A DNA stretch of 63,531 bases, filler included, from Octopus bimaculoides (Eukaryota), in assembly GCF_001194135.2 (NCBI RefSeq). It is 6 parts of 5 records of this genome, joined end to end, with 100 filler letters (N's around TTAATTAATTAA, not from the genome) between each part and the next. Parts side by side here need not be neighbours in the genome. Positions count along the whole stretch, not along the records: positions 25,553 to 47,312 come from NC_069010.1; 5 more parts are not named here. The stretch is one strand, 5' to 3'. The notes under the pieces are model-generated. The model searched no databases and was not told the origin of the DNA. It saw only the letters and a list, made by a program, of their open reading frames with translations. Positions 25,590 to 47,312 of this stretch are shown one piece after another. Both the position numbers and the translations under genes were made by a program. Within the stretch, counting starts at the first letter, position 1; the number at the start of each line of letters is the position of its first letter.

Positions 25590-26000
25590 ATATATATGGC
25601 ACCATGATGGATTCTTTTTATATGGTACCAGCACAGATGCTTTTTGCATGGTACTATCATGGTGCTTTTTATGTGTTCAGGACAAGTGTTTTATGTGGTA
25701 CCAACACAGTTGCTTTTCATGTGGTACCAGCACACTTGCTTTTCATGTGGTACCAGCACAAGTGCTTTTCATGCGGTGCCAGCACAGGTCCTTTTTATGT
25801 GGTGCCAGCACTCTTACTTTTCATGTGGTACCAGCACAAGTGCTTTTCATGCGGTGCCAGCATGGATGCTTTTTATGTGGTACCATTGTGGATGCTTTTT
25901 ATGTGGTACCATCATGGATGCTTTTTACATGATACCAGCTTGGTGCCCTTTTATATGGCACCTGCACAGGTGCCTTCTACATGACACCAGCACAATAACA
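25590..26000. repeat. ~21-22-bp minisatellite (TGCTTTTCATGTGGTACCAGCAC-like)
   Basis: Many visible imperfect tandem units. Confidence 0.9.
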
Positions 26001-26156: not shown

Positions 26157-27678
26157 GTAAGTTAATACTTCATCGTTCTAATGTATCTTTGTATGTTCCC
26201 TAATCTTGTCATGTATTCTGGGCTGTTGTTGTTGTTTGATCCCAGGCTATCCCTGATCCCAGTGGTTAGGGGAGCGGACTCACGGTCATAGGATCGCGGT
26301 TTCGATTCCCAGACCGGGCGTTGTGAGTGTTTATTGAGCGAAAACACCTAAAGCTCCACGAGGCTCCGGCAGGGGATGGTGGCGGAACCCTGCTGTACTC
26401 TTTCACCACAACTTTCTCTCACTCTTATTTCCTGTTTCTGTTGTGCCTGTAATTCAAAGGGTCAGCCTTGTCACACTGTGTCACGCTGAATCTCCCCGAG
26501 AACTACGTTAAGGGTACACGTGTCTGTGGAGTGCTCAGCCACTTGCATGTTAATTTAATGAGCAGGTTGTTCTGTTGATCAGATCAACTGGAAGAGGATG
26601 TGACAAGACTGACCCTTTTTTTTTTTTTNNNNNNNNNNNNNNNNNNNNNNNNNNNNNNNNNNNNNNNNNNNNNNNNNNNNNNNNNNNNNNNNNNNNNNNN
26701 NNNNNNNNNNNNNNNNNNNNNNNNNNNNNNNNNNNNNNNNNNNNNNNNNNNNNNNNNNNNNNNNNNNNNNNNNNNNNNNNNNNNNNNNNNNNNNNNNNNN
26801 NNNNNNNNNNNNNNNNNNNNNNNNNNNNNNNNNNNNNNNNNNNNNNNNNNNNNNNNNNNNNNNNNNNNNNNNNNNNNNNNNNNNNNNNNNNNNNNNNNNN
26901 NNNNNNNNNNNNNNNNNNNNNNNNNNNNNNNNNNNNNNNNNNNNNNNNNNNNNNNNNNNNNNNNNNNNNNNNNNNNNNNNNNNNNNNNNNNNNNNNNNNN
27001 NNNNNNNNNNNNNNNNNNNNNNNNNNNNNNNNNNNNNNNNNNNNNNNNNNNNNNNNNNNNNNNNNNNNNNNNNNNNNNNNNNNNNTTTTTTTTTTTTTTT
27101 TTTTTTTTTCCAGGGTCTAGGTAAAACGTCCAGTGTAGAGACCCAGAATAAAATTAAGTTTGAAATGTTGACACAAGGCCAGCAATTTCAATGCAGGGTG
27201 GGGAGTTGATTGTTTCACCACCCCCGGTACCCGAAGGGACAAGTTGACCTCGGAATAATTTGAACATAATGATGCGTTGATGAAAGACATGGCTCTTGGC
27301 TCTTCCTAATTTATCATTCCAATGATATTCTGTTCATTACAGATATGGTAATCCCTGGCTGGGTGATAGCTGTGACCACCATGCAGGTTGGAGAGCTGTC
27401 GCGGTTTCTAATCAGCCCCGAGTATGGATTTGGTGACTTTGGTTGTCCACCTAGGATCCCCAAAGCCATCACAGGTCAGTATTTCCATTTATTGAATTTT
27501 ACCATTTTGGTGCCATCAATCATGTGATAGAATACTGATTTTCATTGAGTCAATCACTGGTCGATGGCAATTGTTGATGTTGCATGACTTCCGGTTATGG
27601 AAGTCCTGGGGCCGATTTGTTCGACTAAAGGCGGTGCTCCAGCATGGCTGCAGTCAAAAGGACTGAAACGAATAAAAG

Positions 27679-30700: not shown

Positions 30701-31820
30701 TGTCTTGTGATTGTGATGTTGTGAGGTCGTTGTCTGCTGTTGTGAAGTGATTATGTTGTGGTTGTGGCATTGTGAGGTGGCCATCTTTTGGTGGTGTTCG
30801 GCAGATGTCTTGAGGTGTTGGGAGGCAACTGTCTTGTGATTGTGATGTTGTGAGGTCGTTGTCTGCTGTTGTGAAGTGATTATGTTGTGGTTGTGGCATT
30901 GTGAGGTGGCCATCTTTTGGTGGTGTTAGGCAGATGTCTCTTGGTGTTGGGAAGCAACTGTCTTGTGATGGTGGTGTTGTGAGGTCATTGTCTGCTTGTT
31001 ATCGTGTTGTGAGGTGATTATGTTGTGGTTGTGGCATTGTGAGGTGGCCATCTTTTGGTGGTGTTAGGCAGATGTCTCTTGGTGTTGGGAAGCAACTGTC
31101 TTGCGATTATGGTGTTGTGAGGTCGTTGTCTGCTTGTTATCGTGTTGTGAGGTGATTATGTTGTGGTTGTGGCATTGTGAGGTGGCCATCTTTTGGTGTT
31201 AGGCAGATGCCTTATGGTGTTGGGAAGCAACTGTCTTGTGATTGTGGTGTTGTGAGGTCGTCTGCTGTTGTGGTTGTGGCGTTGTGAGATGGCCATCTTT
31301 TGGTGTTGTTAGGCAGATGTCTTGTGATTGTGGTGTTGTGAGGTCGTTGTCTGCTGTTGTGAGGTGATTATGTTGTGGTGTTGTGAGGTGGCCATGTTTT
31401 GGTGTTGTTAGGCAGATGTTTTGAGGTGTTGGGAGGCAACTGTCTTGTGACTGTGGTGTTGTGAGGTCGTTGTCTGCTTGTTATCATGTTGTGAGGTGGT
31501 TCTGTTGTCTCTCCTAACTAATCCTTCCTTCTGCTGTTCCCATTGCAGGCCCTTCTGGTGCTTGACGAGTATGTGCCGTGCAACAGCGAAGAGGAACGTC
31601 AGATCCAAGAGTTACGCCTCTTGGTTCTCCTAAACATGGCCCTCTGCTGTCTCCGTCTCAACAATGCTCCCAAAGCCATCACATATTGCCAGAAAGCTCT
31701 GGCGATTGACAAGAACAACGCTAAGGCGTTTTACAGATTGGGACAGGTAAGTGGGTGTATATACGTGTGTGTATATAAGGACAGGTTGGTTAGGGTATGT
31801 GTATGTTAGGATAGATAAGG

Positions 31821-32194: not shown

Positions 32195-35100
32195 GTTAAA
32201 AAAAAAACAATAGGAAGGGCATCCAGCTGTAGAAACTCTGCCAAATTAGATTGGAGCCTGGTGTTGTCATCCGGTTTCACCAGTCCTCAGTCAAGTCGTC
32301 CAACCCATGCTAGCATGGAAAGCGGACGTTAAACGATGATGATGATGATGATGATATATATATGGACATGTATGTGTATACAGATGTATTTGTGTGTGTC
32401 TGTATTAACCTAATTTATAAACTAATGAATGTGTGTTTTGAGATTTAGCTACTATGTCTAGAAGGCTGTCTGTTTGTCTCCTTTTGCAGGCATACCAGAT
32501 GTTGGGCAAGTACAACGAGGCAGTCACCAACCTAAAGCTGGCTCAGAAGCTGCGACCAACAGATCCGAACGTTTCACAACAACTACAGAAACTGCACAGG
32601 TGAGTTAGGAGGGACCAGGGTTGGCACAAATGGGCTGAGGTAGGGCGGACTATACTCGAGGATTTACGGTAACATTTGACAGTAATCTGAATGCTAAGGG
32701 GTTAATAGTGTATCTAATGTATCCTTCCTTGTTTAGCCCCAGGTCAGTCCTGATCCAGTAGACCTATGATTGAAGATGTTCCAGCTGTGATTGTCCTGTC
32801 TTTTATTCAGGCATAGTGTATCTAGGACTACATTATCTAATGTGTCCTTCTTTATTGCTGTTTAGCCCTAGGTCAGTCCTGATCCTGACTGACCTATGAT
32901 CAAAGATGTTCCAGCTGTGACCGTCCTGTCTTTTATTCAGACATAGTGTATCTAGGACTACATTATCTAATGTGTTCTTCTTTATTGCTGTTTAGCCCTA
33001 GGTTAGTCCTGATCCTGACTGACCTATGATCAAAGATGTTCCAGCTGTGACCGTCCTGTCTTTTATTCAGGCATAGTGTATCTTGGACTACATTATCTAA
33101 TGTGTCCTTCCTTGTTGTTTTGCCCCAAGTCAGGTCTGATCCAGACAGACCTATGATCAGTGACGTTCCAGCTGTGACCATCCTGTCTTTTATTCAGGCA
33201 TTGTGTATCTAGGACTACATTATCTAATGTGTCCTTCCTTGTTGTTTTGCCCCAAGTCAGGTCTGATCCAGACAAATCTATGATCAGTGATGTTCCGTCT
33301 GTGACCACCCTGTCTTTCATTCAGGCATAGTGTATCTAGGACTACATTATCTAATGTGTTCTTCGGTATTTTCGAGTACTGTTAGATAGAGAATGTGACC
33401 ATCCAGGCAGAATTGTTTTATGCCTGCCAACAGGTGATATTCTAGTCCAGGGGTTTTCAAACTTTTTGACTTGCGGACCCCTTTATATTTCAGGCTTTAC
33501 CTTAGGGATCCCCTTATAAACACTTATGAAATTTATACATAAATATTTGCTTAAAATAACATATATTTTTACATTTATTTATTTAACAGTATTTAACAAA
33601 TTAACAAATAGGTTTATTGTCAATTAAAAGATTTCGATTAAAAGACATATAAAATCAAATTGCCCGNNNNNNNNNNNNNNNNNNNNNNNNNNNNNNNNNN
33701 NNNNNNNNNNNNNNNNNNNNNNNNNNNNNNNNNNNNNNNNNNNNNNNNNNNNNNNNNNNNNNNNNNNNNNNNNNNNNNNNNNNNNNNNNNNNNNNNNNNN
33801 NNNNNNNNNNNNNNNNNNNNNNNNNNNNNNNNNNNNNNNNNNNNNNNNNNNNNNNNNNNNNNNNNNNNNNNNNNNNNNNATTCTAGTCCAGGGGTTTTCA
33901 AACTTTTTGACTTGCGGACCCCTTTATATTTCAGGCTTTACCTTAGGGATCCCCTTATAAACACTTATGAAATTTATACATAAATATTTGCTTAAAATAA
34001 CATATATTTTTACATTTATTTATTTAACAGTATTTAACAAATTAACAAATAGGTTTATTGTCAATTAAAAGATTTCGATTAAAAGACATATAAAATCAAA
34101 TTGCCCGTAAAAAGTATTTGCTGTCTACGGACCCCCTGTCTTGTCCTTGTGGTCCCCGGACCACAGTTTGAAAAGCCCTCTTCTAGTCATGTGTTTTTGA
34201 GTACCGTTCATTGGCTAACAGAATCGATGCTCTGCTACAGCCTGTGTAGCAGCCGTGACATTGCTCCTCTCAAAATCACCTCGTTTGTGACGCGGTTCTG
34301 CTTGTCGACCCTCAAGGTCTTTCTGAGGCACCTCAGAAGAGCAGGGCCACCCGTACCTATCGGTAAAAACTACATACCCTCACGCTCACTCACTATGTCT
34401 TTCTCTCTCTTTCTTTCTCTCTTCCCTCAGCGATGTCCTCCAATACAAACAAGACGAGAAAGCCATGTACAAGAAAATGTTTTGCCAAACCACAAAGAAA
34501 TCGCAGTTGTCTTTATGTAAGTATTTCTGGATCTTCCCATTGTTGTTCTTGTTCTTTGTGCAGTTTGATGTTTAAACCCTAGGTCAGTCTTAGACCACCA
34601 AACCTGTAAGCAGTTGATCCAACATGTAAGCAGTAAGCAGTTGATCAAACAAAATGCAGTTCACAGATCTATCGTTTCATACATAATAGGAACCTAACTG
34701 TCTACACACCACACACAAACACACACATGCACATATATCATGGTTCTGGGTTCAGTCCCACAGTGGGGCACCTTGTGCAAGTGTCTTCTACTATGGCCGC
34801 AAGAGGACCAGACCCTTGTCAGTGGATTCAATAAGATGGTAACTATATGAAGCCCATCTTATATACTCTTTTGTTCTTTTACTTGTTTCACTCATTTGAC
34901 TGCGGCCATACTGGAGCACTGCTTTGAAGGGTTTTAGTTGAACAAATCAGTTACATTTTTGAAGCCTAGTACTTACTCTATTGGTCTCTTTTGCTGAACT
35001 GCCAAGTTACGGGGACGTAAACACACCAACATTGGTTACCAAGCTATGTTGGGGTAACACACACACTTATATATATTCTTATATGTTATATATTCTTTTA

Positions 35101-35306
35101 TTTGTTTCAATCATTTGACTGCGGCCATGCTGGAGCACCGCTTTTAGTCGTGTAAATCGACCCCAGGACTTATTCTTTGTAAGCCTTGTACTTATTCTAT
35201 CAGTCTCTCTTGCCAAACTGCTAGCTGACAGGGACGTAAACACACCAGCATCGGTTGTCAAGCGATGTTGGGGGACAAACACAGACACAAACATATACAT
35301 ACATAC

Positions 35307-35349
<43 letters not shown>

Positions 35350-38031
35350 CAACGGGCTTCTTTCAGTTTCCGTCTACCAAATCCACTTACAAGGCTTTGG
35401 TCGGCCCGAGGCTATAGTAGAAGACACTTGCCCAAGGTGCCACGCAGTGGGACTGAACCCAGAACCATGTGGTTTGTAAGCAAGCTACTTACCACACAGC
35501 CACTCAGAAATTTATTTTGTGGAACTATTTTTCGGATATATTCTGTATTCTTTTGTCATATGACGCCAGTGTCAACCTGGATGGTCACATCTGGAGCACT
35601 TTTGTTACAGGTCCAATGCATCAAGGCTGGTCTTCGGCTAGACGACAACATAAACAGCAGCAGCAATTTTTATTCATTTCTAAGATCTCTGTCTCCTCTT
35701 TTTTTTGGTTTTCTTGTGCAGTTCCTTCAAATCGGGAGAACATGGTCCAGGAATCGGGCGAAAAAGTTGTTGAAGTTTCTGAAGAATTTAAAGAAAATGT
35801 CAACAACTACCTTAAGTGAGTGTCTTGTTGCTTACATTAGGGTCATCATCATCATCATCACCATCACTATCATCATTGCCACCACTGTCATCACCACCAT
35901 CGTCATCGTCATTGCCATCATCATCATCACCACCACCACCACCATCATCATTATTTGACCCTTTAGCATTCAAATTACTCTGTCAAATGTGATCCTTATT
36001 TATTCACATTGTTTTGAATTAATCATAGATTATCTCATAGCGTTCAAATTTCAATGATATCATCATCATCATCGTCGTCGTCGTCGTTTAACGTCCGCTT
36101 TCCATGCTGGCATGGGTCGGACGATTTGACTGAGCACTGGTGAAAACCAGATGGCTACACCAGGCTCCAATCTGACTTGGCAGAGTTTCTACAGCTGGAT
36201 GCGCTTCCTAACACCAATCACTCCGAGAGTGTAGTATCGGGGGTTGATAAATTAAATACCAATGAAATACTGGGGGTCGATGTAATACTAGTCCCCTCCC
36301 ACCAAATTTGAGGCACTGTGCCTCCAATAGAAAGGATTATTATTATTATTAAAGCAATGAGCTGGCAGAATTGTAAGCATGTTGGCAAAAATACTTAGCA
36401 GCATTTTGTCCATCTTTGTTCCGAGTTCAAATTCCGCCAAAGTCAAGTTTGCCTGTCATCCTTTTGGGGTCAGTACCAGTCAAATACTGGGGACAGTGTA
36501 ATCGGCTTACCCCCCCTCCCTCACAATTACTGGCTTTGTGCCGAAATTTGGAATGAATATTATTATTATTATTGTTGTTATTTACTTTTGTTATTGCAGG
36601 AACTTTCTCTCAGACAATTGCCGGAGTGAATGTCCAATGCCTGCCTCCAGCATGACCGTGGCCGAGATAGCTTATGTCCTAGAAATAGTCGATGATATGA
36701 AACTCATAGCTGTACAGACTGGTTCGGTGAGTTCAGTTGGCTTCTTAAATATCATGTCACCAGTGGAGCCCCTACCCTCATCGACAGATCATTCCTATCA
36801 CATGTTAACCCTCTCCTAGATGTTCTGGTACATATGCTCTCCCTTGCTGCAGCGAGGTGTGAACTGAGGTAATGTAGAATACAGTGTTGTGTGACAGAGA
36901 CACTACGGTGAGAGATAAATCTCCTCCTGGATAAGATGCCAGTCTATCATGCTAACATTCCCCCAGATGATCTGATACCTATTATTCCTTACATGTTAAG
37001 TGTCCCTCCAGCTCTTCTGTTATTGTATTTCTGTTGTAATACACATTTGTTTCTATTCATCATCGTTTAACATCCGCCTTCCATGTTAGCATGGGTGGGA
37101 TGGTTTCACAAGAGCCAGTCAGGCAAAAGCCGGCACTAGACTTCTGTGACTATTTTGGCAGGATTTTTACAGCTGGATGCCCTTCCTAAAACCAGCCAAC
37201 TCAGCAGAGTGGACTTGGTGCTTTTTATCGGGCGCAAGCGAGGGCAGTTTTGGCAAGGCTTTTACAGTCGGATGCCCTTCCGCACACCAAACACTTTACA
37301 GTGTGGACTGGATGCTTTTAAGTGGCACCGGCACTGACAGGGTCACCAAGAATTTGCAAGACAAAAAAAAAAATCTTTCAAGCCGGGAGTGGGTATTGGA
37401 GGAGGTGATCTTGTGTTGGATGACAAAAGGTTAGAGTGAGACAGACAGAGAAACAGGTGTCTTGCTGTAGAGGAAGTACAAGCTTAACTGGCCAGAGAGA
37501 GGGGTTAGGAATGAAGACAGAAATAGGTGTACTACCGCAAAGGAAATACATGGCTACCCAACCTGAGCGAAGCGCATGAAAGTAACTAAACAATTTACTA
37601 AAATACTTTTGTCGTTAATTAATCTGGTGTTTAGAACATAAATTACCATGATTTAACGAGGGAATATTTTAATTGGGATCATTTTTCAACAGGAAATTCG
37701 TATTATGGAAACAAGGGCAGTTTCAATGAGATTTCGTATTAAAAGGAGTGTTGGTCGTAAGTGGATCTCAAGTTAGTTTTAAGTGTCTTATTTCTGTGCA
37801 ACCTCACTTTATTTACTCCCCAGCCCCACTCTACTTAGTGTTTAACCTCACTCAAGATAGTGTACAGTTCCACTCAGGTGACTCTCCAGCTTCACTCCAC
37901 TGATGTCTGTCTTCTAACTCTCTACTCCTCTATTACAGGGTGAAAACATTCAGATCGAAATCCGCAAGAACAACAACAACAAGACCAGCAACAATAGGAA
38001 AGTGAAGAAGCGTGAAATGGTGTGGAAGTAA
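26067..38031 (+). CDS. FKBP6: FKBP6/Shutdown-like FKBP-type PPIase + TPR co-chaperone; 11 exons, 5'-incomplete
   Basis: Exons 26067-26156, 27343-27474, 28539-28609, 28784-28843, 29998-30057, 31549-31746, 32490-32599, 34431-34516, 35722-35815, 36600-36726 and 37939-38031 all have AG/GT boundaries and compatible phases, ending at TAA 38029-38031. The translation has an FKBP domain (VHYTGFFEFADEPFDSSRLRG..GELSRFLISPEYGFGDFGCPPRIP..LFEIELLSF), close to the FKBP6 pattern Y.G..E..D.PFDS/GCPP.IP/LFEIELL, then TPRs (LLNMALCCLRLNNAPKAITYCQKALAIDKNNAKAFYRLGQAYQMLGKYNEA) and YK.MF. Confidence 0.9.
26258..26593 (+). mobile_element. tRNA-derived SINE (family B)
   Basis: Near-identical to the reverse complement of 5681-6060. 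Confidence 0.85.
27343..27474 (+). CDS. FKBP6: FKBP6 exon (MVIPGW..GCPPRIPKAIT)
   Basis: TACAG acceptor, GTCAGT donor, phase 1/1, FKBP motif. Confidence 0.9.
27895..28475. mobile_element. Palindromic MITE with GGATC termini and a central (TAACCC)n (Merlin-like)
   Basis: Inverted arms; 8-bp TSD CTAGCATC at 27887-94 and 28476-83; CCCTAACCCTAACCCTA at ~28207-28222. Confidence 0.85.
28539..28609 (+). CDS. FKBP6: FKBP6 exon (LFEIELLSFVEDAGIEDYFQMTE)
   Basis: TTTCAG acceptor, GTAAAT donor; C-terminal strand of the FKBP domain. Confidence 0.88.
28784..28843 (+). CDS. FKBP6: FKBP6 exon (EEKSQIPFDQILKIANMEKS)
   Basis: TTCCAG acceptor, GTAAAT donor, phase 0/0. Confidence 0.85.
29201..29581 (-). mobile_element. 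tRNA-derived SINE (family C)
   Basis: Same sequence as 35091-35504; partial copies at 34742-35060, 61066-61203 and 28910-29140; head contains GGTTCAGTCCC and GGCACCTTGGGCAAGT. Confidence 0.85.
29998..30057 (+). CDS. FKBP6: FKBP6 exon (TPR1 start: FGTEFFSAKKIRKSYNKYRL)
   Basis: TTTACAG acceptor, GTAAGT donor, phase 0/0. Confidence 0.88.
30065..31500. repeat. G/T-rich higher-order minisatellite in a FKBP6 intron
   Basis: Recurring TGTTGTGAGGT submotif grouped into variable larger blocks (GGCCATCTTTTGG..GGCAGATGTC..GCAACTGTCTTG). Confidence 0.9.
31549..31746 (+). CDS. FKBP6: FKBP6 exon (TPR2-3)
   Basis: TGCAG acceptor, GTAAGT donor; TPR consensus NMALC..AITYCQKALAID.NNAKAFYRLGQ. Confidence 0.92.
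31948..31983 (+). ncRNA. Degenerate minimal hammerhead-like remnant inside a dispersed repeat (31871-32050)
   Basis: GTTT-CCGACAA-AGAGCTCCTCCC-GAAACGT-C-ATAC has the same layout as 14906-14940 but a mutated core and stem II. Confidence 0.3.
32490..32599 (+). CDS. FKBP6: FKBP6 exon (TPR3: AYQMLGKYNEAVTNLKLAQKLRPTD)
   Basis: TTTGCAG acceptor, GTGAGT donor, phase 0/2. Confidence 0.9.
32705..33362. repeat. ~104-bp tandem repeat, about 6 copies
   Basis: CTAGGACTACATTATCTAATGTG..GACCTATGATC..TTCCAGCTGTGACC recurs about every 104 bp. Confidence 0.9.
33448..34180. mobile_element. hAT (Charlie-like) MITE
   Basis: TIRs CAGGGGTTTTCAAACT / AGTTTGAAAAGCCCTC; 8-bp TSD TTCTAGTC at 33440-47 and 34181-88. 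Its left ~227 bp are duplicated across the N-gap, probably an assembly overlap. Confidence 0.88.
34431..34516 (+). CDS. FKBP6: FKBP6 exon (DVLQYKQDEKAMYKKMFCQTTKKSQLSL)
   Basis: CCTCAG acceptor, GTAAGT donor, phase 2/1; EK.MYKKMF helix typical after FKBP TPRs. Confidence 0.88.
35091..35504 (-). mobile_element. tRNA-derived SINE (family C)
   Basis: High identity to 29201-29581. Confidence 0.85.
35722..37938 (+). CDS. FKBP6: FKBP6 C-terminal extension exons 35722-35815 and 36600-36726
   Basis: GTGCAG/GTGAGT and TTGCAG/GTGAGT boundaries; phases 1/2 and 2/0 join the flanking exons. Confidence 0.75.
36061..36240. mobile_element. Dispersed SINE-like repeat with (CAT)n end (family D); other copies at 32205-32355, 37060-37450 and 40175-40218
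   Basis: Shared CATCATCGTTTAACGTCCGCTTTCCATGCT..CATGGG motif. Confidence 0.7.
37939..38031 (+). CDS. FKBP6: FKBP6 terminal coding exon (GENIQIEIRK..VWK*)
   Basis: Polypyrimidine + TACAG acceptor, phase 0, open to TAA. Confidence 0.7.
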   Translation, partial: GENIQIEIRKNNNNKTSNNRKVKKREMVWK

Positions 38032-38140: not shown

Positions 38141-38418
38141 CAGGGTGTCTACAAGGTCTGGGTACATGGAGTAAATTAAATATAAGAAATAATAATTTCT
38201 TAAAGTATGTGTTAATCCCCATGTGGCTACATGGAGTAAATAAAATCATAACATAAGCAATTAAATATAAGAAATAATAATTTCTTAAAGTATGTGTTAA
38301 ATCCCCATGTGGGTACATGGAGTAAATAAAATCATAGCATAAACAATCAAATATAAGAAATAATGATTTCTTAAAGTATGTGTTAATCCTCATGTACCCA
38401 GAGTTTGAGGACACCCTG
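38141..38418. mobile_element. Tc1/mariner-type MITE with internal ~70-bp tandem repeats
   Basis: TIRs CAGGGTGTCT..GGGTACATG / CATGTACCCAG..GACACCCTG with TA flanks. Confidence 0.8.
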
Positions 38419-40329
38419 TATATTCACATACATACTCACATATAATGTATGTATGTGTGTGAATATGTATATATATGTATGTATTTTTGTGTATGTCTGT
38501 GTATTAATATATGTATGTATATACATACACACACATAAATATATATACACACACATACATATAAATACACACATAAAGATCTTTTACTCATTCCATCTAT
38601 TTTATTAAGACTGTTATATATATATGTATGTATGTATATATATATATGTATGTATGTATATATATATGTATGTATATATATATATTATTTTTTAATTTTT
38701 ATTTGATTTTTTTTTTTNNNNNNNNNNNNNNNNNNNNNNNNNNNNNNNNNNNNNNNNNNNNNNNNNNNNNNNNNNNNNNNNNNNNNNNNNNNNNNNNNNN
38801 NNNNNNNNNNNNNNNNNNNNNNNNNNNNNNNNNNNNNNNNNNNNNNNNNNNNNNNNNNNNNNNNNNNNNNNNNNNNNNNNNNNNNNNNNNNNNNNNNNNN
38901 NNNNNNNNNNNNNNNNNNNNNNNNNNNNNNNNNNNNNNNNNNNNNNNNNNNNNNNNNNNNNNNNNNNNNNNNNNNNNNNNNNNNNNNNNNNNNNNNNNNN
39001 NNNNNNNNNNNNNNNNNNNNNNNNNNNNNNNNNNNNNNNNNNNNNNNNNNNNNNNNNNNNNNNNNNNNNNNNNNNNNNNNNNNNNNNNNNNNNNNNNNNN
39101 NNNNNNNNNNNNNNNNNNNNNNNNNNNNNNNNNNNNNNNNNNNNNNNNNNNNNNNNNNNNNNNNNNNNNNNNNNNNNNNNNNNNNNNNNNNNNNNNNNNN
39201 NNNNNNNNNNNNNNNNNNNNNNNNNNNNNNNNNNNNNNNNNNNNNNNNNNNNNNNNNNNNNNNNNNNNNNNNNNNNNNNNNNNNNNNNNNNNNNNNNNNN
39301 NNNNNNNNNNNNATATATATATATGCATCTGTGTGTATATGTATGTATATATATATATATATATATGGAGGACAGTCTGTATATATGTATGTATGTATCT
39401 ATATATATATGAATGTATGTATATATATTTTATATGCATGTGTATATATATATATATATATGCATGTAAGTATCTATATATATATATATTATACATATAC
39501 ACACACAAACCTATATATATGCACATACTCACAGAGACTCATACAGGAACATAAGTGGTTGAAACCATGTAACACAAGGTCTTTTGGTGTGATGCTCCAC
39601 CGATTCTGCCAACTGCTCTCTTAGAAACTTCATTATTTTCCCAAATATATCTTTTCCCATTCTTTCCCTTCCTTAGTGTCTCTCTGACACACATACACAC
39701 ACACACACATATATTTGTATGTATACTTTCACATATATACGCATGTATGTTTATATAGCTTAATGGTACAGACCACTCAGCTGGAATTTTGAGAAGTAGA
39801 GGATTTAATCTGCCAAAAATATCTTCCCTATCTCCTAAACTGTTTCCATAGCTATTCTGCTTATGAAACTTGACTTAATTTTTTCTAAAATTCCAAATTA
39901 CTTGATGCTCCGAAGTGTGTCTGTAAATATATTTATATATATATAATGTTATACTCTTCCAAGATGTTGTGATAGTGACTGGGCACACAATACTATAATA
40001 GTAAAGGAAACAAGTGTTTTCATTGGTTGGTTGGGCGAGAGGTGACTGGACTCTGGGCTTGTCCTCTCATATCTCTCCCCCAACCATAGAAGTCCTTAAA
40101 ACGGTGCAATAAAAGCCTGTTATTTCATTAGAAAAGAAAAAGAAAAAGCAAAGATTTCACAAGACATCTTTAATCATCATCATCATCATCGTTTAATGTC
40201 CGCTTTCCATGCTAGCATNNNNNNNNNNNNNNNNNNNNNNNNNNNNNNNNNNNNNNNNNNNNNNNNNNNNNNNNNNNNNNNNNNNNNNNNNNNNNNNNNN
40301 NNNNNNNNNNNNNNNNNNCATTCATGTCA

Positions 40330-40667
40330 GGATTACATGCAAAATTTAAAGAGTGATTAATCATGCGGGAAGATTATTCAAACTTCATTGATAAGGAACA
40401 AGAGGGGCCGGATCTGGTTCATCAGCATCAGATTCCTGTACTTCTTTGCATTTCAGCCATTGTTTCTTTATGGCCGGTCGCTGTCGGTCTTCGTCATTGG
40501 TGTTTAACTTTGATGAAGATATTGGTACCTTCCAGAATACATTTCAACCTCTCCGACATTGTTTGTGGTAAACCACATTTCTTCGGTGTATATTAGACGC
40601 TCATCTACACAGCTACCGAAGGTAAAATTGTCGCTGGCTTGACATTGCATTCTGCCCGACGTTATTT
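40330..40667 (-). pseudogene. NS1 helicase fragment (copy 4, B/B' region only)
   Basis: GRMQCQASDNFTFGSCVDERLIYTEEMWFTTNNVGE, then frameshifted KCILEGTNIFIKVKHQ; homologous to copies 1 and 2. Confidence 0.8.
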
Positions 40668-40960
40668 GAAAATATATGAACACCTTGCAAGTTTTTTCTG
40701 AATACAATTTTCCTGGGACTCTTCAGGGGTTGTAGCTTAGTGTTTTGCCTCAACTTCCAATAATGTCTATCTGTTCCTCCTCATGATAAAATGCATCTCT
40801 TTCTAAAGCCAGATGTAAACAATTCTTGCCTTCTGCATCAACAGCACCTTTTGAAAATATAATATGAACACCTTGCAAGTTTTTTCTGAATACAATTTTC
40901 CTGGGACTCTTCAGGGGTCGTAGCTTAGTGTTTTGCCTCATCTTCCAAGCTTGAAATAAA
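40668..40960 (-). pseudogene. Decayed ankyrin-repeat gene fragment, with an ~85-bp direct duplication (40668-40750 / 40852-40940)
   Basis: NLQGVHIIFSKGAVDAEGKNCLHLALERD matches the ankyrin pattern L..GA...D..G..xLHLA. Confidence 0.7.
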
Positions 40961-41072
40961 GGCAGGGTCATCTGGTCCTTCAGGGGAACTGTTGTCTAGG
41001 TCAGTAGGTAGCTTCCTTTTTTGGGTTTCACTTTCTCTGAGATTGAAATAACATCATCCTACTGTGTGCCCT

Positions 41073-41079
41073 CACAAAA

Positions 41080-41110
<31 letters not shown>

Positions 41111-41191
41111 CTTCCGCGCTGATCCGTCCAAGCCCGTTCCCTTGGCTGTGGTTTTGCTAGACAGTGGGAATCTCATTGATCCATTCATGCA

Positions 41192-41223
<32 letters not shown>
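41073..41223 (-). pseudogene. 28S rRNA: 28S rDNA fragment starting exactly at the R2 insertion site
   Basis: The reverse complement reads TAGCCAAATGCCTCGTCATCTAATTAGTGACGTGCATGAATGGATCAATGAGATTCCCACTGT..GCCAAGGGAACGGGCTTGG..GAAGACCCTGTTGAGCTTGACTCTAGT, i.e. conserved 28S sequence with substitutions and an ~13-nt deletion. Confidence 0.95.
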
Positions 41224-42300
41224 GTCCAACTTGCTTTCGCTATCTTTCCTTGTTAATTTAACATGGGCGGTCCCACTGCGCTCGCCAAATAGTGACCTGG
41301 ATCAAGCACTATCATAAGCCGAGGGTAAGGCCCCAACAGCGCACGAGGCCGACAGGGGGTTCGAATTGAAGGGCGACTGACTGGACGAAACCGACAGGCC
41401 CCCTACGCCTGTCATTGGACACTCTTTCGGGCATGGTCTCTGTTGGGGCCAAGCTTCCGGATGCTACGTGGGACGGGTCTAGTCAGCGCCTGTACCCCGC
41501 CCTGCGATGGAGCTGCAGGGAAACGGGGTCTCGATACACGCACAACAAGCGAGGGACTTGAGGAGTGTCCAACGATTGCCGCAAGATGGAAAAGCGACTA
41601 CGACTACAAATCGACCGGCGAAACTGAGAAATACCGACCCAGCAACCGAGAAACTCAGACACGGACATAGCGGGACCGTGCGACTGTATATCGTCGCTAC
41701 ACGATCCTGACGAAACCTCGAACCAAAAGCGACCGGCACCGAATACTACGAAACCCAGCCGAATCACTAAACACCAAGAGCCGGAGGGTGCCTTCGCATG
41801 CCCTGTCCTGATATGAGGTCCCCGAGCGAACCCTGAGAGACCGTAGTCAGAACCTGCCGGATGGAACTGGCAGTAAACTCTAGAAACGACGTCGACGCCC
41901 AGGTAGGAGGGGATTATCGCCCACACTCCCACTGTAATCGAACGTTGGGACACGCCCCTTGATCCACCCTCATGGATCAGTCCCTAAGCATGCTGTACGT
42001 GCAGAGCATTGCTGTCCTGCTCAGCAACTTCATTAANNNNNNNNNNGTAGTCAGAACCTGCCGGATGGAACTGGCAGTAAACTCTAGAAACGACGTCGAC
42101 GCCCAGGTAGGAGGGGATTATCGCCCACACTCCCACTGTAATCGAACGTTGGGACACGCCCCTTGATCCACCCTCATGGATCAGTCCCTAAGCATGCTGT
42201 ACGTGCAGAGCATTGCTGTCCTGCTCAGCAACTTCATTAACGACTTGTCCCTAATGCACAGAGCTTTCAATGCCCTCTCGGCCTCGCGGCTCCAGGCACA
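41224..42300 (-). mobile_element. 5'-truncated R2 retrotransposon: C-terminus of the ORF plus 3' UTR
   Basis: 42181-42300 translates AWSREAERALKALCIRDKSLMKLLSRTAMLCTYSMLRD*, resembling the end of an R2 restriction-like endonuclease domain. A GC-rich UTR follows and ends precisely at 28S TAGCC, replacing the normal upstream TTAAGG. Confidence 0.8.
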
Positions 42301-42625
42301 AATATTTAAAAATCCACTTATCTGACATAAGTATGGATTCCTTCTTATAATGAAACAAATCTTTTTTTATAGCAAGGTGCAAACAACTATTGCTACCTCT
42401 GGATGAAAAAGGGCTCAACCTTAATCCTAACCCTCTCTCACAGCAGAAATTTCAAAATCCACTTATCTGACATAAGTATGTATTCCTTCCCATAATGAAA
42501 CCAATCTTTCTTTACAGCAAGATGTAAACAACTATTGCTACCTCTGTCAACAGCGCCTTTTTGAAATAAAATGTGGACCCCCTCCAAGCAGACGCTTGGA
42601 CCCAGCATGGGTTTTCTCAACACAA
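42301..42625 (-). pseudogene. Decayed ankyrin-repeat fragments (~140-bp unit)
   Basis: EGVHILFQKGAVDRGSNSCLHLAVKKDWF plus a partial second unit. Confidence 0.7.
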
Positions 42626-42629
42626 TAAA

Positions 42630-43110
42630 AAATATAAAGACGCTATTGTTTGATCTGTATCTTAAATTTACCTGTTGTATATGCATAACTTGGTATATTG
42701 TAGAACGTTCTTTTCATTTCTCTATTTCTTTTTTAGGAAGACAATTCTCTCTCATGTTTGGTTCTTCATATAAACATAGTTTGATGTTGACCATGTCTTG
42801 AAAAGGAAAAGATGATCCCCCTTGTGTTGTTCATGTGAATCTGAAAAGTTTATCAATTGATTTTGCATTGTATGATTTACCCCTGTTGGGTGTACCTTCC
42901 ATTATAAATGTATTTCTTTTTGGTATATTTTGATGTAAGTTGTTCTATAGTTCTTGGACAAATTGTTGAGTATCAATGGATTGGATATCCATAATTCTCT
43001 CGAATATTTTGAATGATAAGTCTAGATTATGACAGTCATTGGTTTTGTAAGATTTGCAAAATTCATCATTTCAGGATAATTTTGAAATCCGAGAGATATT
43101 GAGGAGGTTT
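42630..43110 (-). pseudogene. Endogenous parvovirus-like NS1 helicase fragment of a second, divergent lineage (copy 3)
   Basis: Hand translation IPKRNTFIMEGTPNRGKSYNAKSIDKLFRFT*TTQGGSSFPFQDMVNIKLCLYEEP; Walker A 42873-42896, Walker B LYEEP; in-frame stops hide it from the ORF track. Confidence 0.8.
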
Positions 43111-43123
43111 GTTAAGAACTCTC

Positions 43124-43900
43124 TTACGCAGTTCGCTTAAAGTATCTTTTCTTAGAATTACCAACAATTGAGACTTGGCAAGCAATGTTTGTCACTTGAA
43201 TTTTTGTGTAGTTTTGCCATATTGTTAACCAAATTAATGGGTTCAGTTCTTTTTGTCCCCATTCTTTTAGTTGTGGCATTGGTCTATGCGTTTTGTATAG
43301 GAACATTCTTGCTTTTTATGGCTTCTTCTTCTTGTGAACATCTGTCCCAAGGGAATGAGTTTCCGGTGCTTAAACAGGGTGTGCGCTTCATTATTCTTTC
43401 TGCCTGGTGTTTTTATGTTTATGTAGGTATCTGTACCTTCTAGGATGCATTTTGCCTCCTCGATATTGGTGTTGACGAACTACATTTCGTCAGTAAAAAT
43501 TAAAGTTTTGTCGATACAAGTACCGAATGTGAAATTATCGGATGCTTGGCATCGCATCCTACCGCAGTTCAGGAACGTAAGATGTAGCGCTTTCCCGAAT
43601 TGGGTGCTCCGTGAATGTGGAGAGAATTTTTCTTGGGTAGAATTTTGTGACATACGTCGAATATGTCTTTGGTGAATGCTTGCGAATCGATGTGGAGGAA
43701 GGATGTCCAGCTTTCATAAATTCCTAGAGAGGTAGTGACATTCCAGTAGGATACACGTTCGTGTACAAAGGTAACAAAAAGTCCACAGACGCAGAAATTT
43801 TCGGCCCAGTAGGGCGAAAATTGCTGTAAAAAAACAGACAACAGTTCGAATCCAAGTAGAATACACAACCACAAAATAACGATAGACGAACAAAAACGAA
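43124..43900 (-). pseudogene. Endogenous parvovirus/densovirus-like NS1 SF3 helicase fragment (copy 2, most complete)
   Basis: PKKNSLHIHGAPNSGKR (43587-43610), frameshift, then NCGRMRCQASDNFTFGTCIDKTLIFTDEM*..EEAKCILEG..INIKHQAERIMKRTPCLSTGNSFPW..AIKARMF: motifs A, B, B', C and Arg finger in order. Confidence 0.88.
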
Positions 43901-43949
43901 CTCACTCAACAATAGCAGGTAGCAGAGAAAATTCTCGATACACAGCTGA

Positions 43950-44630
43950 AAAAAGGCTCAACCCTAACCCTCTCTCACAACAGAAATTTCAAAATCCACT
44001 TATCTGACATAAGTATGGATTCCTTCTCATAATGAAACAAATCTTTCTTTACAGCAAGGTGTAAACAACTATTGCCACCTTGAATTTTTATGTAGTTTTG
44101 CCATATTGTTAACCACATTAATGGGTTCAGTTCTTTTTGTCCCCATTCTTTTAGTTGTGGCATTGGTCTATGCGTTTTGTATAGGAGCATTCTTGCTTTT
44201 ATGGCTTCTTCTTTTTTTATAGCAAGGTGTAAACAACTATTGCTACCTCTCGATGAAAAAAGGCTCAACCCTAACCCTAACCCTCTCTCACAGCAGAAAT
44301 TTCAAAATCCACTTATCTGACATAAGTATGGATTCCTTCCCATAGTGAAACAAATCCTTCTTTACAGCAAGGTGTAAACAATTATTGCTACCTCTGGATG
44401 AAAAAAGGCTCAACCCTCACCCTAACCCTCTCTCACAGCAGAGATTTCAAAATCCACTTATCTGACATAAGTATGGATTCCTTCCCATAATGAAACAAAT
44501 CTTTCTTTACAGCAAGGTGTAAACAATTATTGCCACCTCTGTCAACAGCACCTTTTGAAATAAAATGTGGACCCCCCTCCAAGGGGACTCTTGGACCCAG
44601 CATGGATTTTCTCAACACAATAGATTTTAT
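43950..44630 (-). repeat. Tandem ~140-145-bp ankyrin-fragment units with an embedded NS1 piece
   Basis: The unit AGGCTCAACCCTAACCCTCTCTCACAGCAGAAATTTCAAAATCCACTTATCTGACATAAG..ACAGCAAGGTGTAAACAACTATTG recurs at ~43954, ~44261 and ~44406; the minus strand reads G.N.CLHLAVKKDLF. Confidence 0.8.
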
Positions 44631-44889
44631 CACAATTGAAGATGTTCCTCAAACTTTTTGTGTTGTCCCGTTTGGAACATATTTCCATTGTCCCTGAATT
44701 CCCTATTTTTCACCAGTTCAAAGAGGTTATCCCCAAACTTGGTCTACAGTTTTGAGTTTTGGGATCTTTTTTTTTTCTTCCGTTTTTGAAGCTCTGTGAC
44801 ATATTCAACTTAAAATGTCTTCTGCTGCTTTCACCTACAATTGAGACACGACCAAGCAATGTCTGTCTGTTTGTCTCAGTCTCCCTTTT

Positions 44890-45436
44890 ATTCCGACAAT
44901 GTCTAACTTCATCTCATCCAACATGTCCATGAGTTCATTCTCACGACGAAAGGAATCTATCTTCAAAGCAAGAGGGAGACATTTATGGCCTTTCCCATCA
45001 ACAGCACCTTTGGAAAATGTCAATCCTTCAAAGGTGGCCCCTAGATACAGCAAGGAGCAGTGTTTCCATATCACCACAGTTCTGTCTCCATGTATTTTAC
45101 AGACCCTGGGACATTCTCACTACAATAGATTTTATCAGAATTGAAAATGTTCCTTCTCTTCTTGTGTTGTTCCTGTTAGAACATCTGACCATTTCTATGA
45201 AGAGTGTTAATATCTGCCTCTTCAGCTGTTAACATGTGAATCTTCCCAAGGTGACCCCTGGAGATGGCTTAACCAACTCCTCGTGCAACACGGTAGCTGT
45301 CCCGAGTGTTGCTCTCAGCAGCCACTTCCGTTGAAGAGATGATCCTCTTCATGAAGACACATTGCTTCTCCAGCTGGGCACTCAGACACCCGAACTCTGC
45401 CTTCCTGTTGTTGTAAGGTTGGGTACTTTCAGCCAT
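44890..45436 (-). pseudogene. Decayed ankyrin-repeat host gene exon beginning at a splice acceptor + ATG
   Basis: TTTTTCTGTGTTATTTCAG|ATGGCTGAA at ~45436; downstream frames read AEEADINTL, KSIV and FSKGAVDGKGHKCLPLA..DMLDE; frameshifted. Confidence 0.5.
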
Positions 45437-45779
45437 CTGAAATAACACAGAAAAAATATTTATAACCATGTCAATTGAAGTAGAAGTGAAAAATAACTTA
45501 TCGTACAGTGATACTATACCACAGTATCGGACAAAAGGACGATTTCCTCTTTCTCTCTAACTCTATTAGAATTCTTCTCCAAAGTTCCGTGTATTCAGTC
45601 CCAGTATTATGAAAGTAGGACGCTGTTCTGGCTGGGGAGAAGACAGCTGCTGATTGACTCTGTTAAATTTGCCGTCGGTTCAAAAAACCCCATATCTCGC
45701 GGGCTGCACCTAACGCAAATCTGAACAAGCTGCTGCAGGCTGCATTTGGCATTTAGCAAGCGAATCAGCGATGTAGTTG

Positions 45780-46440
45780 AATAAGATTGAATACCAGAGA
45801 AATGGCCAGTCACTTCTTTAAGTAGAGGCATTGGTTGAATTGGTTGAATCGTTTTGAATATAAACATTCTGGCTCAAATTGCTGCCTTTTCCTGTGGACA
45901 TCTATCCGATGGTGTTTTAGAATTCTTTCGTATTGGAGTTTTGTTTTGCCCTATATTTCTGTACTTTCCCGTATGCATTTACCTTCTTCAATATTAGTGT
46001 TGATGAACCATATTTCGTCAGTGAATATCAAGGTTTTGTCAATGCATGTTCCGAAAGTAAAGTTGTCGTTTGCTTGACAACGCATTCGTCCACAGTTCAT
46101 TAAGTCGTTTCTTATTGATCGTAAAATGTAGCCTTTTCCAGAATTTGGAACTCCATGTATATGTAGTGAGTTTCTTTTCGGAAGAATTTTCTGGCAGACA
46201 TCGAAGAGATTTTTAGCAGATGTTACGTGATTAATATGGTGGTACATTGTCCACTTTTCGTAAATCCCTAAGGATGTTTTGACATCCCAGAAGGTGTTAG
46301 ATGCTTCTTCAAAGAACATTTTTTTATCTTGAATTTTGGTCGCATATTGGAGTCATGCGGTTCTCAATCTGTAGTTGTGTGGCTGCAGGTAGTAGCCAGG
46401 AATTTAAGTTTGGTGTATTTCAGTATATGGACATCCATGT
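45780..46440 (-). pseudogene. Endogenous parvovirus/densovirus-like NS1 SF3 helicase fragment (copy 1)
   Basis: PKRNSLHIHGVPNSGKGYIL (Walker A 46131-46154), LIFTDE (Walker B), EEGKCI (B'), AAI*ARMF (Arg-finger region); stops and deletions present. Confidence 0.85.
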
Positions 46441-46444
46441 GTCG

Positions 46445-47312
46445 TAGTACATATTTTTTCCGACAGTTAATACGAAGTGTGTTATATCTCCTAAGCCTGT
46501 AGAGTTATATTACAAAAATCCTTACCTTTGTCGTAGGGAACTGAGGTAGCCAGTATAGACCATTCCAAGGAGAATTGTTTATTGCAATTTTTCAGTTCCC
46601 AAATAAATTTACTTAGGCCGGTGCTGTTAGCTTTATTCCTATCCCTAAATGAAGAATAATGGTTCGATATTCTCTTGGAGACCTGCGTCGATGAGCTACC
46701 TACCTAAAACGAGACATCTGCGTAAGACATTACCTTACATTGATAAACCACATTCTTGGTCTTGGCATTTGCACTTAAAAACTTAATTCTATTAGGATTT
46801 GATTCCGAGATGCTAATCTTATTATTGTTACAGATATTGTTATGATTCCTAATATTGTACGTACTACCTATATTAATACCTAAATGACTATTGCCATCAT
46901 ATGAGTGTGTTAAATTACTGGAGTAATTATTATAGTTATTGATATAAACATTACTATTATCATCATAACTGGGATGGCTGTCTAGAGATGAATCTAAAAG
47001 CCTGAAGTTATGGGAAGATATAATCTGTAACAAATTTTTAGTATTCGAAAACCCAAATCTAACCTTATGTGAGTTGATTATTGGGTAATAGTAGGAACCC
47101 CTAGGAAAGTTCCTACTCACCGCGTCTTGGAACTGCCGGACCAAATTTGATTTAACTTGCTTCCCAAATGGGAGGATGAGCCAGATATTATCATCAAATC
47201 TAGTTACAGTATTAGTGTGGTTGAATAGATGAAGATTTTTGTTTTTGTTAAAGTGTTTAGAGCCAGTTGGGCCTCCTCTCTTATGTGAGTGATAAGCATG
47301 ATCCACTTTCTC
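46445..47312 (-). mobile_element. Penelope-like element (Naiad-like), RT C-terminus + GIY-YIG endonuclease, decayed
   Basis: IWLILPFGKQVKSNL..FP..YYPIINSHKVRFGFSNTKNLLQIISSHN matches the PLE post-RT motif. Then NVVYQCKV..F*VGSSSTQVSKRISNHYSSFRDRNKANSTGLSKFIWELK..EWSILATSVPYDKGKDFCN is the GIY-YIG, with TAG in place of the Y of YVG. Confidence 0.85.

Follow-up and report, generated by a model that had tools for sequence, protein, structure and literature searches.

Five NS1-like SF3 helicase fragments, here called A to E, lie within 6 kb of Octopus bimaculoides DNA, in a window (the whole stretch analysed) of 63,531 nucleotides. All of them (5/5) are on the minus strand, arranged head-to-tail in one orientation between 145-nt repeats and other mobile-element debris, and all derive from the SF3 helicase half of an NS1/Rep gene. 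A sequence-only reading of this DNA had described four copies in 40330-46440, numbered along the minus strand (1 being D, 2 C, 3 B and 4 A). These four are present, but the fifth, E, had been missed, and D reaches 46506, beyond the former limit of 46440. Every motif quoted in that reading was found, on the minus strand: the diverged pair FWDVKTSLGIYEKW and YWNVTTSLGIYESW is located in D and C; the signature GRM.CQA.DNFTFG.C.D..LI.T.E is common to D, C and A, although A starts with SGRM and not CGRM; and the helicase with EGTPNRGKS..SSFPFQD..LYEEP is B.

Structure and decay of the copies

Copy D (45800..46506) was identified by Pfam, by ten homologues (E from 3e-44 to 4.5e-17) and by homology to the relatives' loci L001, L002 and L004, which extends from 46506 down to 45914. 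It is the best preserved copy, but lacks the nuclease domain, is truncated in its C-terminal tail, of which a remnant is visible in the as-is translation, and contains two frame changes and at least two in-frame stops. Its longest open stretch, of 122 codons, matches Pfam Parvo_NS1 at E=2.3e-10 (40.3 bits, the gathering cut-off being 20 bits), while PPV_E1_C stays below its own cut-off; an exact look-up of the open frame gave no match. Copy C (43148..43874), recognised by tblastn with P0002, P0003, P0004 and P0010, by tblastx to L001-L004 and by Pfam (Parvo_NS1, 7e-5 and 22.4 bits for one block), runs from upstream of Walker A to about the natural C-terminus, with the nuclease domain missing, and is broken by three frame changes and at least one in-frame stop. 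It is the nearest relative of D, with 66% and 83% amino acid identity in two blocks. A single whole minus frame of 40319-47312 scores 3.8e-19 against Parvo_NS1, the C block lying in another frame.

Copy A (40390..40690; tblastn with P0003, P0004 and P0010, 1e-15 to 1e-17) starts shortly behind Walker A and covers motifs B and B'. Its 5' part is lost, Walker A with it; the copy carries at least one frameshift and one to three in-frame stops, and adjoins a 95-nt repeat (40665-40760 and 40850-40948) at its 5' end. Copy B (42700..43100; Pfam, phmmer and tblastn with P0011, the last covering 42753-43055) is divergent, about 28% (28.6%) identical to D. Truncated at both ends, it spans Walker A to just beyond Walker B, approximately residues 231-331 of a 593-aa relative, and has three in-frame stops in ~140 codons, with no frameshift detected within it. 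Its phmmer search returned 103 relatives, the best of them P0011 at 50% identity. Fragment E (44079..44216), 138 nt from the C-terminal tail of NS1 found by nucleotide identity to C and by tblastn with P0003 and P0010, is unbroken internally and sits between 145-nt repeats. It matches the tail of C (43195-43333) at 134/138 nt (repeat family D5, 98%); E arose recently by local copying of this part of C and is the sole local duplicate.

Walker A (GxxxxGK[S/T]) follows the consensus in B, is retained with deviations in C and D, and is truncated away in A and E. Copies A to D keep the motif B region (aromatic-P/T-F followed by hydrophobic residues and an acidic end), and motif C, with the sensor-1 Asn, can be discerned both in C and in the relatives. 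All five fragments are truncated, and A-D contain stops, frameshifts or both; no copy at the locus is able to work as a helicase today. Any present role of the fragments could be exerted only through RNA.

Repeats, neighbours and assembly

The interspersed repeats around the fragments match O. bimaculoides at 80-96%, and the fragments are contiguous with these shared repeats within an N-free stretch. Embedded among host repeats and broken by the disabling changes in A-D, the fragments are therefore endogenous, as had been supposed. A host repeat family of 145-nt units, which contain a CCCTAA-type motif, occurs on the 3' side of B (42275..42654; repeat families D1, D2 and D7), where it aligns with 44299-44622 by blastn at 92% over 325 nt. 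A single unit lies between C and E (43947..44080; repeat search, blastn), and about three units lie upstream of E (44210..44650; TRF, blastn), for which TRF gives a period of 145, 2.2 copies and 95% matches. A GIY-YIG-like reading frame (46494..47312, minus strand), a neighbour and not a viral fragment, abuts the truncated 5' end of D. It has internal stops, is open to the edge of the piece and shows a weak Pfam match (GIY-YIG, 0.037-0.053, below cut-off), with no homologue at E<=1e-3 and no homology to what precedes the helicase in L001, L002 and L004. This frame is probably another mobile element, which displaced or replaced the upstream part of D.

Outside all helicase copies, at 41843..42240, two identical 194-nt stretches (41843-42036 and 42047-42240; repeat family D4, 100%) flank a 10-N gap (42037-42046). 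The gap is situated between A and B, within G+C-rich DNA unrelated to the helicases, and is crossed by no NS1 frame; its flanks resemble either overlapping ends of contigs left unmerged or a genuine tandem repeat of 204 nt. A second gap, at 40219-40318, may cut the 3' end of A. Five N runs in the piece, the identical ends of the 10-N gap and the separation of the fragments by repeats would suit an assembly artefact, in which dispersed copies were misjoined via the shared 145-nt repeats or scaffold gaps. Such an artefact is very improbable, however: B, C, E and D share one N-free stretch (42047-47312, 5.3 kb), so that only the linkage of A depends on the scaffold join, and B and C adjoin with no repeat between them, the 3' end of C lying ~50-100 nt from the truncated 5' end of B.

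Identity of the fragments

Among the SF3 families, the fragments belong to the parvovirus-type NS1 helicases and to no other. The assignment to Parvoviridae NS1, made initially from motifs, is borne out by Pfam and PDB profiles, which rank Parvo_NS1 and AAV Rep first. Matches to Parvo_NS1 (D 2.3e-10, B 2.4e-7) or, by tblastn, to the relatives (A 1e-16 to 1e-17) are far beyond chance. A profile built from D and its homologues found in the PDB only AAV Rep40/68 (8e-10) and parvoviral 'Non-structural protein 1', and the D-family profile matches AAV2 Rep40 column for column up to and including the TSN motif. The B-family and D-family profiles align with each other with a probability of 100% (E=3.7e-40).

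Copy B gives equal scores on Parvo_NS1 (2.4e-7, 30.5 bits) and PPV_E1_C (3.3e-7), which would allow for a non-parvoviral origin, from a transposon, a Polinton-like element, a bidnavirus, a CRESS virus or a papilloma/polyoma-type virus. The relatives of B speak otherwise. All of its top 40 (40/40) match Parvo_NS1, up to 1.9e-30, against 9.3e-19 for E1; their profile finds Rep68 in the PDB at 2.7e-39 and papillomavirus E1 at 1e-15; and the nearest relative lies on a 4-kb contig next to a capsid-like gene with a PLA2 domain. The content of the window could also be read in favour of such an origin: as the sequence-only reading had stated, it contains no HUH nuclease (tblastx with the upstream parts of L001-L004; Pfam in six frames) and no VP-like capsid sequence (capsid search and Pfam), and no terminal hairpins or inverted terminal repeats occur near any copy, the sole inverted-repeat pair in 40319-47312 being a weak one of 32 nt in a G+C-rich block. 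Nevertheless, neither strand bears a transposase, polymerase or integrase Pfam domain, terminal inverted repeats are absent, and the repeats between the copies are missing from the relatives' loci, which argues against a transposon-borne helicase. A non-parvoviral source thus retains scarcely any probability.

Lineages and relatives

The proposal of at least two viral lineages is upheld by a neighbour-joining tree, in which B groups with P0011, P0012 and P0114 in 159/200 bootstrap replicates and D with Logan relatives in 200/200. B is a separate NS1 lineage from A, C and D, which belong to one cephalopod-associated lineage. In the lineage of B, P0011 comes from a metagenome contig of 4017 nt; the other gene there contains PF08398, a parvoviral PLA2 domain, which scores 2.4e-12 beside NS1 in relative L005. 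Many relatives are on 3-4.4-kb contigs, the named ones are the NS of 'Turdus hortulorum parvoviridae sp.' and the NS1 of 'Pot worm parvo-like virus 2', and the consensus of B's relatives contains the nuclease motif HxHxxxR. Relatives of A, C and D possess an upstream frame collinear with the N-terminus of full-length NS1, and in L002 and L003 the frames collinear with the P0087 N-terminus show the HxH motif. No capsid gene for this second lineage was found in the window or in its relatives, so NS1 homology is the sole ground for its viral nature. A member of it with broken frames is transcribed in Sepia esculenta.

Divergence and number of sources

Neutral decay distributes changes evenly across codon positions. 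Between D and C the mismatch at positions 1/2/3 was 0.12/0.14/0.54 (p=8e-14) and between D and A it was 0.14/0.26/0.52; the relatives show a third-position-biased mismatch similar to that of D and C. The pN/pS ratio was 0.14 (bootstrap 0.08-0.22), with a range of 0.14-0.23 among comparisons, values that are rough since synonymous sites among A, C and D are near saturation. The location of the differences mainly at third codon positions means that A, C and D diverged as working genes before insertion, and this pre-insertion divergence occurred under purifying selection. The motifs, orientation and neighbourhood common to A, C and D, together with the existence of one real local duplicate, E, might have pointed to a single integration from which local duplication and neutral decay generated the three copies, but the codon-position test and the pN/pS values contradict it, and hardly any likelihood is left to it. 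The phrase 'followed by local duplication' in that proposal cannot be kept as the origin of A, C and D, given the third-position bias and the fact that only E was duplicated locally. At least three source genomes, belonging to two deep NS1 lineages, are represented at the locus, by B, by A and by the sister pair C and D, whose members had themselves diverged beforehand.

Origin of the cluster

We regard the locus as an octopod graveyard of parvovirus-derived endogenous elements that was, with moderate confidence, filled by several separate captures. Viral DNA would have entered germ-line DNA by non-homologous integration, and the most likely route would be several separate integrations into a repeat-rich, break-prone or retention-favoured locus, comparable to the virus-fragment clusters of mosquitoes and shrimp; further insertions, truncations and one small duplication (E) may have come afterwards. 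The repeated independent captures proposed from the sequence are hence the favoured reading, with at least three sources, although a composite insertion or an old tandem family competes with them. Several points weigh against serial capture. Several independent insertions within 6 kb of a gigabase genome require a special locus; the same half of NS1 is found in all fragments, which is more than random capture predicts, even if no other part is as easily detected as the helicase; C and D, mutual nearest relatives and neighbours, also fit a local origin; and the linkage of A rests on a scaffold join.

The single orientation throughout and the short distance between C and B would be explained if a mixed concatemer from several co-infecting parvovirus-like genomes had integrated once, the host repeats being co-ligated or expanded later; in shrimp, parvoviral inserts made of several jumbled fragments, with host repeats at their borders, are known (PMC8982415). 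One such composite event is a minority possibility, to be taken seriously but not expected. It would need four diverged NS1 sources in one germ cell simultaneously, with B so distant from D and A, C and D saturated at synonymous sites, and the seemingly uneven density of breaks (B has three stops in ~140 codons, D an open stretch of 122 codons) weakly hints at different ages.

Clustering, single orientation, the shared helicase half, selection-shaped divergence and the sisterhood of C and D would all be accounted for by an old tandem gene family of the host, co-opted and helicase-only, which arose from one ancient parvoviral insert and passed through purifying selection, local duplication and recent pseudogenisation; the transcribed, broken-frame relative in Sepia esculenta also suits it. 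This history seems unlikely. Near-saturated synonymous divergence would make the paralogues older than octopods at host mutation rates, yet the copies of so old a family lie in fast-turning-over repeat DNA and would all have been inactivated recently. A resembles copies from other samples (72-81% identity to Logan relatives) more than it does C or D (only 61-66%), B is of a different lineage and thus no paralogue, and the relatives elsewhere retain the nuclease half, so that the helicase-only form is not ancestral.

Within the favoured reading of several separate captures, a more specialised function can be imagined. In Aedes, piRNA-producing loci contain many virus fragments of varied sources that face one way amid the remains of mobile elements; most of these fragments stem from RNA viruses, and they are tied to LTR retrotransposons. 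The octopus locus resembles them in its multi-source fragments of one orientation, which have at least three origins, are all (5/5) on the minus strand and are interleaved with 145-nt repeats and the GIY-YIG-like element. By analogy, it might be a dedicated piRNA-cluster-like trap for virus fragments, serially capturing helicase pieces from successive diverged parvovirus infections as a datable record, and it may feed a sequence-based antiviral memory; we consider this rather doubtful.

Relation to known systems

The locus is an unusually dense case of a known type of viral fossil and no new type of element. Mollusc parvovirus fossils are known but thinly described, and our literature search found no paper on those of cephalopods. 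At least two deep NS1 lineages reached the octopod germ line: one (that of B) has a near relative on a virus-sized contig with a PLA2-bearing capsid-like gene, and the other (that of A, C and D) has relatives that are present and transcribed in cuttlefish. So dense a one-way, multi-source cluster suggests that cephalopods may have loci that collect viral DNA, like arthropods.

A survey of animal genomes (François et al. 2016, PMC5013282) described endogenous parvoviral elements, including mollusc sequences that are closer to vertebrate-type parvoviruses and branch outside known genera. The fragments studied here are likewise germ-line pieces of NS1 with broken frames in host DNA, and the vertebrate-type affinity agrees with AAV Rep as their best structural-database match. 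They differ in having several diverged sources within 6 kb, and the survey mentions no cephalopods. In Penaeus monodon, the IHHNV-derived clusters (PMC8982415) pack several parvovirus fragments into 6-16 kb bounded by repeated host sequence, much as several fragments are packed here in a short stretch with host repeats; those clusters, however, consist of repeated, inverted and reordered pieces of one virus, whereas the octopus locus combines several diverged viruses in one orientation and only their helicase region. The best solved-structure match, AAV2 Rep40/Rep68 (PDB 1S9H, 1U0J, 7JSE and others), has Walker A, the FPF-type motif B region, B' and sensor-1 (TSN) collinear with the present family, but the identity is low, and the copies in the window are broken and without the HUH nuclease domain. 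An annotated gene of O. bimaculoides, LOC106883473 (XP_014789984.1; UniProt A0A0L8FGN6, 'Parvovirus non-structural protein 1 helicase domain-containing protein'), is with P0011 the nearest relative of B and represents a genomic insert of the same lineage (52% amino acid identity, in the 159/200 clade). Its flanks differ from those of B except for interspersed repeats, and the two are therefore not orthologous. LOC106883473 retains ~390 NS1 residues in one frame, including the N-terminal half, against ~100 residues and three stops in B, and capsid-like remains lie just upstream of NS1 in this insert (O. bimaculoides L008).

Five helicase fragments on one strand

All the NS1-like sequence of the piece studied (25553-47312, from NC_069010.1) lies on the minus strand, in five SF3 helicase fragments, A to E. 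Fragment A (about 40390-40690) is 5'-truncated, lacks the Walker A motif and carries at least one frameshift and one to three stops; its 3' end may be hidden in a gap of 100 N. Fragment B (about 42700-43100) retains some 100 residues of a protein of about 590, with three stops and no frameshift. Fragment C (43148-43874) starts ahead of Walker A, reaches roughly the natural end, changes frame three times and has at least one stop, while D (about 45800-46506) has two frame changes, at least two stops and a tail cut short. Fragment E (44079-44216) is an unbroken stretch of 138 nt repeating part of the C-terminal tail of C, to which it is identical at 134 of 138 nt. Walker A conforms to the consensus in B only, and none of the five fragments encodes a working helicase. 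Scores above the gathering threshold of Parvo_NS1 (PF01057) were reached by a 122-codon open stretch of D (2.3e-10), by B (2.4e-7) and by a block of C (7e-5). Translations were searched as they stand, with X for a stop, or compared block by block; no joined, consensus or ancestral sequence was used.

A sequence-only reading had described four parvovirus-like NS1 copies. All four were found, and its motifs are all present on the minus strand, along which its numbering runs downward, its third copy being B; the fifth piece, E, was missing from its list. That reading had recognized neither an HUH nuclease nor a capsid, in agreement with the six-frame Pfam search of 40319-47312 on both strands, which returned nothing beyond Parvo_NS1: no nuclease, capsid, PLA2, polymerase, transposase or reverse transcriptase. 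Nor did any helicase copy have a hairpin-like inverted repeat nearby, and Rfam and tRNA scans of 25553-47312 gave no match.

The piece is interrupted by runs of N at 26629-27085, 33667-33879, 38718-39312, 40219-40318 (the gap bordering A) and 42037-42046. The last, of 10 N, is flanked by two perfectly identical stretches of 194 nt (41843-42036 and 42047-42240), which look like overlapping contig ends abutted rather than merged, or else a genuine 204-nt tandem repeat. It sits in a block of 54% G+C without NS1 similarity and is crossed by no helicase frame. The sequence from 42047 to 47312, carrying B, C, E and D, is uninterrupted; A is the only fragment linked to the others through the 10-N join. 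The 54% G+C block itself (40950-42240), which contains the perfect 194-nt duplicate, shows long overlapping open frames on both strands, of up to 156 codons, and gave no match in Pfam or Rfam.

Parvoviral identity of the two lineages

A word-seeded search found no close homologue of B, and an exhaustive HMMER search retrieved 103 relatives. Parvo_NS1 is matched by each of the best 40 of these 103 (up to 1.9e-30), more strongly than papillomavirus E1 (9.3e-19), and a profile of the relatives scores 2.7e-39 with Rep68 versus 1e-15 with E1. The best relative, P0011, is a protein of 593 aa with 50% identity, encoded on a 4017-nt metagenome contig whose other gene carries a parvoviral PLA2 domain (PF08398, 2.4e-12). 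The second nearest is an Octopus bimaculoides protein, XP_014789984.1, named in UniProt 'Parvovirus non-structural protein 1 helicase domain-containing protein'; further named relatives are a nonstructural protein of 'Turdus hortulorum parvoviridae sp.' and the NS1 of 'Pot worm parvo-like virus 2'. Many relatives lie on contigs of 3-4.4 kb.

For D, 10 homologues were obtained (3e-44 to 4.5e-17), all from short Logan contigs and all with Parvo_NS1 precomputed or detectable. A profile of D and these homologues, compared with 177,635 sequences of solved structures, matched only AAV2 Rep40/Rep68 (8e-10) and parvoviral 'Non-structural protein 1', the alignment beginning at Walker A and continuing beyond the TSN motif. 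The profiles of the D and B families also align to each other (probability 100%, E=3.7e-40). Because of the Parvo_NS1 and Rep matches, the names and contigs of the relatives and the mutual alignment of the family profiles, the best placement does not fall with non-parvoviral SF3 helicases, and the parvoviral identity proposed from sequence alone is upheld.

The contigs carrying relatives of A, C and D reach further upstream, where a frame containing an HxH motif aligns to residues 15-134 of a 555-aa NS1; hence the full gene of this family has the usual nuclease-helicase layout, of which the copies in the window have lost the first half. One relative with broken frames (L004, from Logan SRR31864755) derives from RNA-seq of Sepia esculenta larvae (PMC11917092), so that the lineage is present and transcribed in a cuttlefish as well. 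A scan of IMG/VR with the D-family profile found no relative. No capsid was found by Pfam in the frames upstream of NS1 in the relative contigs L003 and L001. In the longest relative contig, L003 (3.6 kb), the NS1 remnant is preceded by about 2.3 kb (1-2287) with several frames of 70-150 codons on both strands and no Pfam match; a short stretch of it (1260-1391) is conserved with L001 (34-165).

In three independent cases among relatives of B, NS1 is preceded on its own strand by a capsid-like gene: in the metagenome contigs L005 (that of P0011, 464-3953) and L007 (2-3833), and in an O. bimaculoides insert (L008, 8591-10570). The arrangement runs opposite to the classical NS-then-VP order, and could reflect a real permuted genome or contigs derived from concatemers. 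The two ends of L007 match each other in inverted orientation over 17 nt; in L005 there is no overlap between the ends.

Divergence before insertion

B and D share only about 28% identity. A neighbour-joining analysis of 119 helicase cores with 200 bootstrap replicates (computed in numpy) placed B with P0011 and the O. bimaculoides protein in 159/200 replicates and D with its Logan relatives in 200/200, and gave no resolution at deeper nodes. At least two lineages are thus represented, as the sequence-only reading had proposed. C and D are mutually nearest (66% and 83% aa identity in two blocks), and for A the Logan relatives are closer (72-81%) than either C or D (61-66%).

Codon positions were compared on nucleotide-level alignments read in D's own open frame; tblastx blocks were not used for C and D, since off-frame blocks inflate the mismatch at first and second positions. 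Mismatch at positions 1, 2 and 3 was 0.12, 0.14 and 0.54 between D and C (p=8e-14) and 0.14, 0.26 and 0.52 between D and A, and four relatives from other samples showed the same pattern against D. Neutral decay of duplicates spreads changes evenly over codon positions. As the mismatches are uneven and concentrated at third positions, A, C and D were already separate genes, shaped by selection, at the time of their insertion. The pairwise dN/dS comparison suggested earlier points the same way: pN/pS (Nei-Gojobori), computed with synonymous sites close to saturation, was 0.14 for D-C (bootstrap 0.08-0.22) and 0.23 for D-A, which places the divergence before insertion and not in neutral decay. 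Of the D-C difference, neutral change can explain no more than about the mismatch at first positions, roughly 12% for both copies together, which fits the handful of breaks per copy. Of the captures followed by local duplication envisaged in the sequence-only reading, duplication is supported for E, copied from the tail of C, and not for A, C and D.

A co-opted helicase-only gene that formed a tandem family long ago would also account for the signature of selection, together with the common orientation, clustering and domain coverage. This route remains, but it requires that paralogues at saturated synonymous divergence stayed neighbours in unstable repeat DNA and that every one of them died recently; it conflicts with A being closer to copies from other samples, and B cannot belong to such a family.

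Origin of the cluster

Among the three remaining routes, we favour serial capture. Separate integrations of viral DNA would have accumulated in a repeat-rich locus that often breaks or retains inserts, which would allow fragments of different ages; the uneven density of breaks among the copies weakly suggests such differences. Later events can be seen as well: E was copied from the tail of C into an array of a 145-nt repeat, and the direct repeats around B, C and E and the frame adjoining D, both described below, belong here too. Serial capture is the pattern already known from arthropod clusters of virus fragments. The end of C adjoins the truncated start of B, as it might in one composite insertion of a mixed concatemer, and such an insertion would resemble the jumbled IHHNV inserts of shrimp (PMC8982415); this third route remains too, but it requires four diverged viruses simultaneously in one germ cell. 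Retrocopies, with a common 3' end and variable 5' truncation, were rejected: the tail of D is also truncated and no poly(A) follows C.

Parvovirus-related sequences of molluscs, nearer to vertebrate-type parvoviruses and branching outside known genera, were described in 2016 (PMC5013282), and an annotated NS1-helicase gene already exists in O. bimaculoides; our literature search found no paper on cephalopod parvoviral fossils. The cluster belongs to a known class of viral fossil and is distinctive in its density, single orientation and mixed ancestry.

Repeats and neighbouring sequence

The interspersed repeats of the piece are 80-96% identical to those of a 22-kb stretch of O. bimaculoides chromosome CM046628.1, marking the host as an octopod. 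In that stretch an NS1-like insert of B's lineage closely follows capsid-like remains; B is not orthologous to this insert. Repeats in common (75-96% identity) lie at 29228-29556, 34897-35468 (two adjacent copies), 32211-32356, 36062-36216 and 40173-40218.

The 145-nt repeat family, with a CCCTAA-type (telomere-like) motif, is interleaved with the helicase fragments (42275-42654, 43947-44080 and 44210-44650; weaker copies at 40768-40879 and 44928-45039) and occurs neither at the loci of the relatives nor in the stretch of O. bimaculoides that was examined. Direct repeats 92% identical (42304-42627 and 44299-44622) bracket B, C and E.

A GIY-YIG-like frame (46494-47312, minus strand), with internal stops and open to the edge of the piece, directly adjoins the 5' end of D. 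Its Pfam GIY-YIG match reaches only 0.04-0.05, below the cut-off, and a search found no homologue at E<=1e-3; its layout may resemble that of a widespread repeated-gene family of aquatic invertebrates. That it forms one gene with D was rejected, as the relatives of D lack it at the corresponding place and have the NS1 N-terminal region there instead. The missing nuclease half of D could lie beyond this frame, outside the piece.

A G/T-rich satellite occupies 30068-31478, in units of about 138 nt built of 30-nt sub-repeats, with GC skew up to 0.6. Tandem arrays were also seen at 25593-25994 (a 26/52/78-nt minisatellite), 32730-33364 (4.9 copies of a 127-nt unit, 91% matches) and 38174-38395 (2.6 copies of an 86-nt unit).
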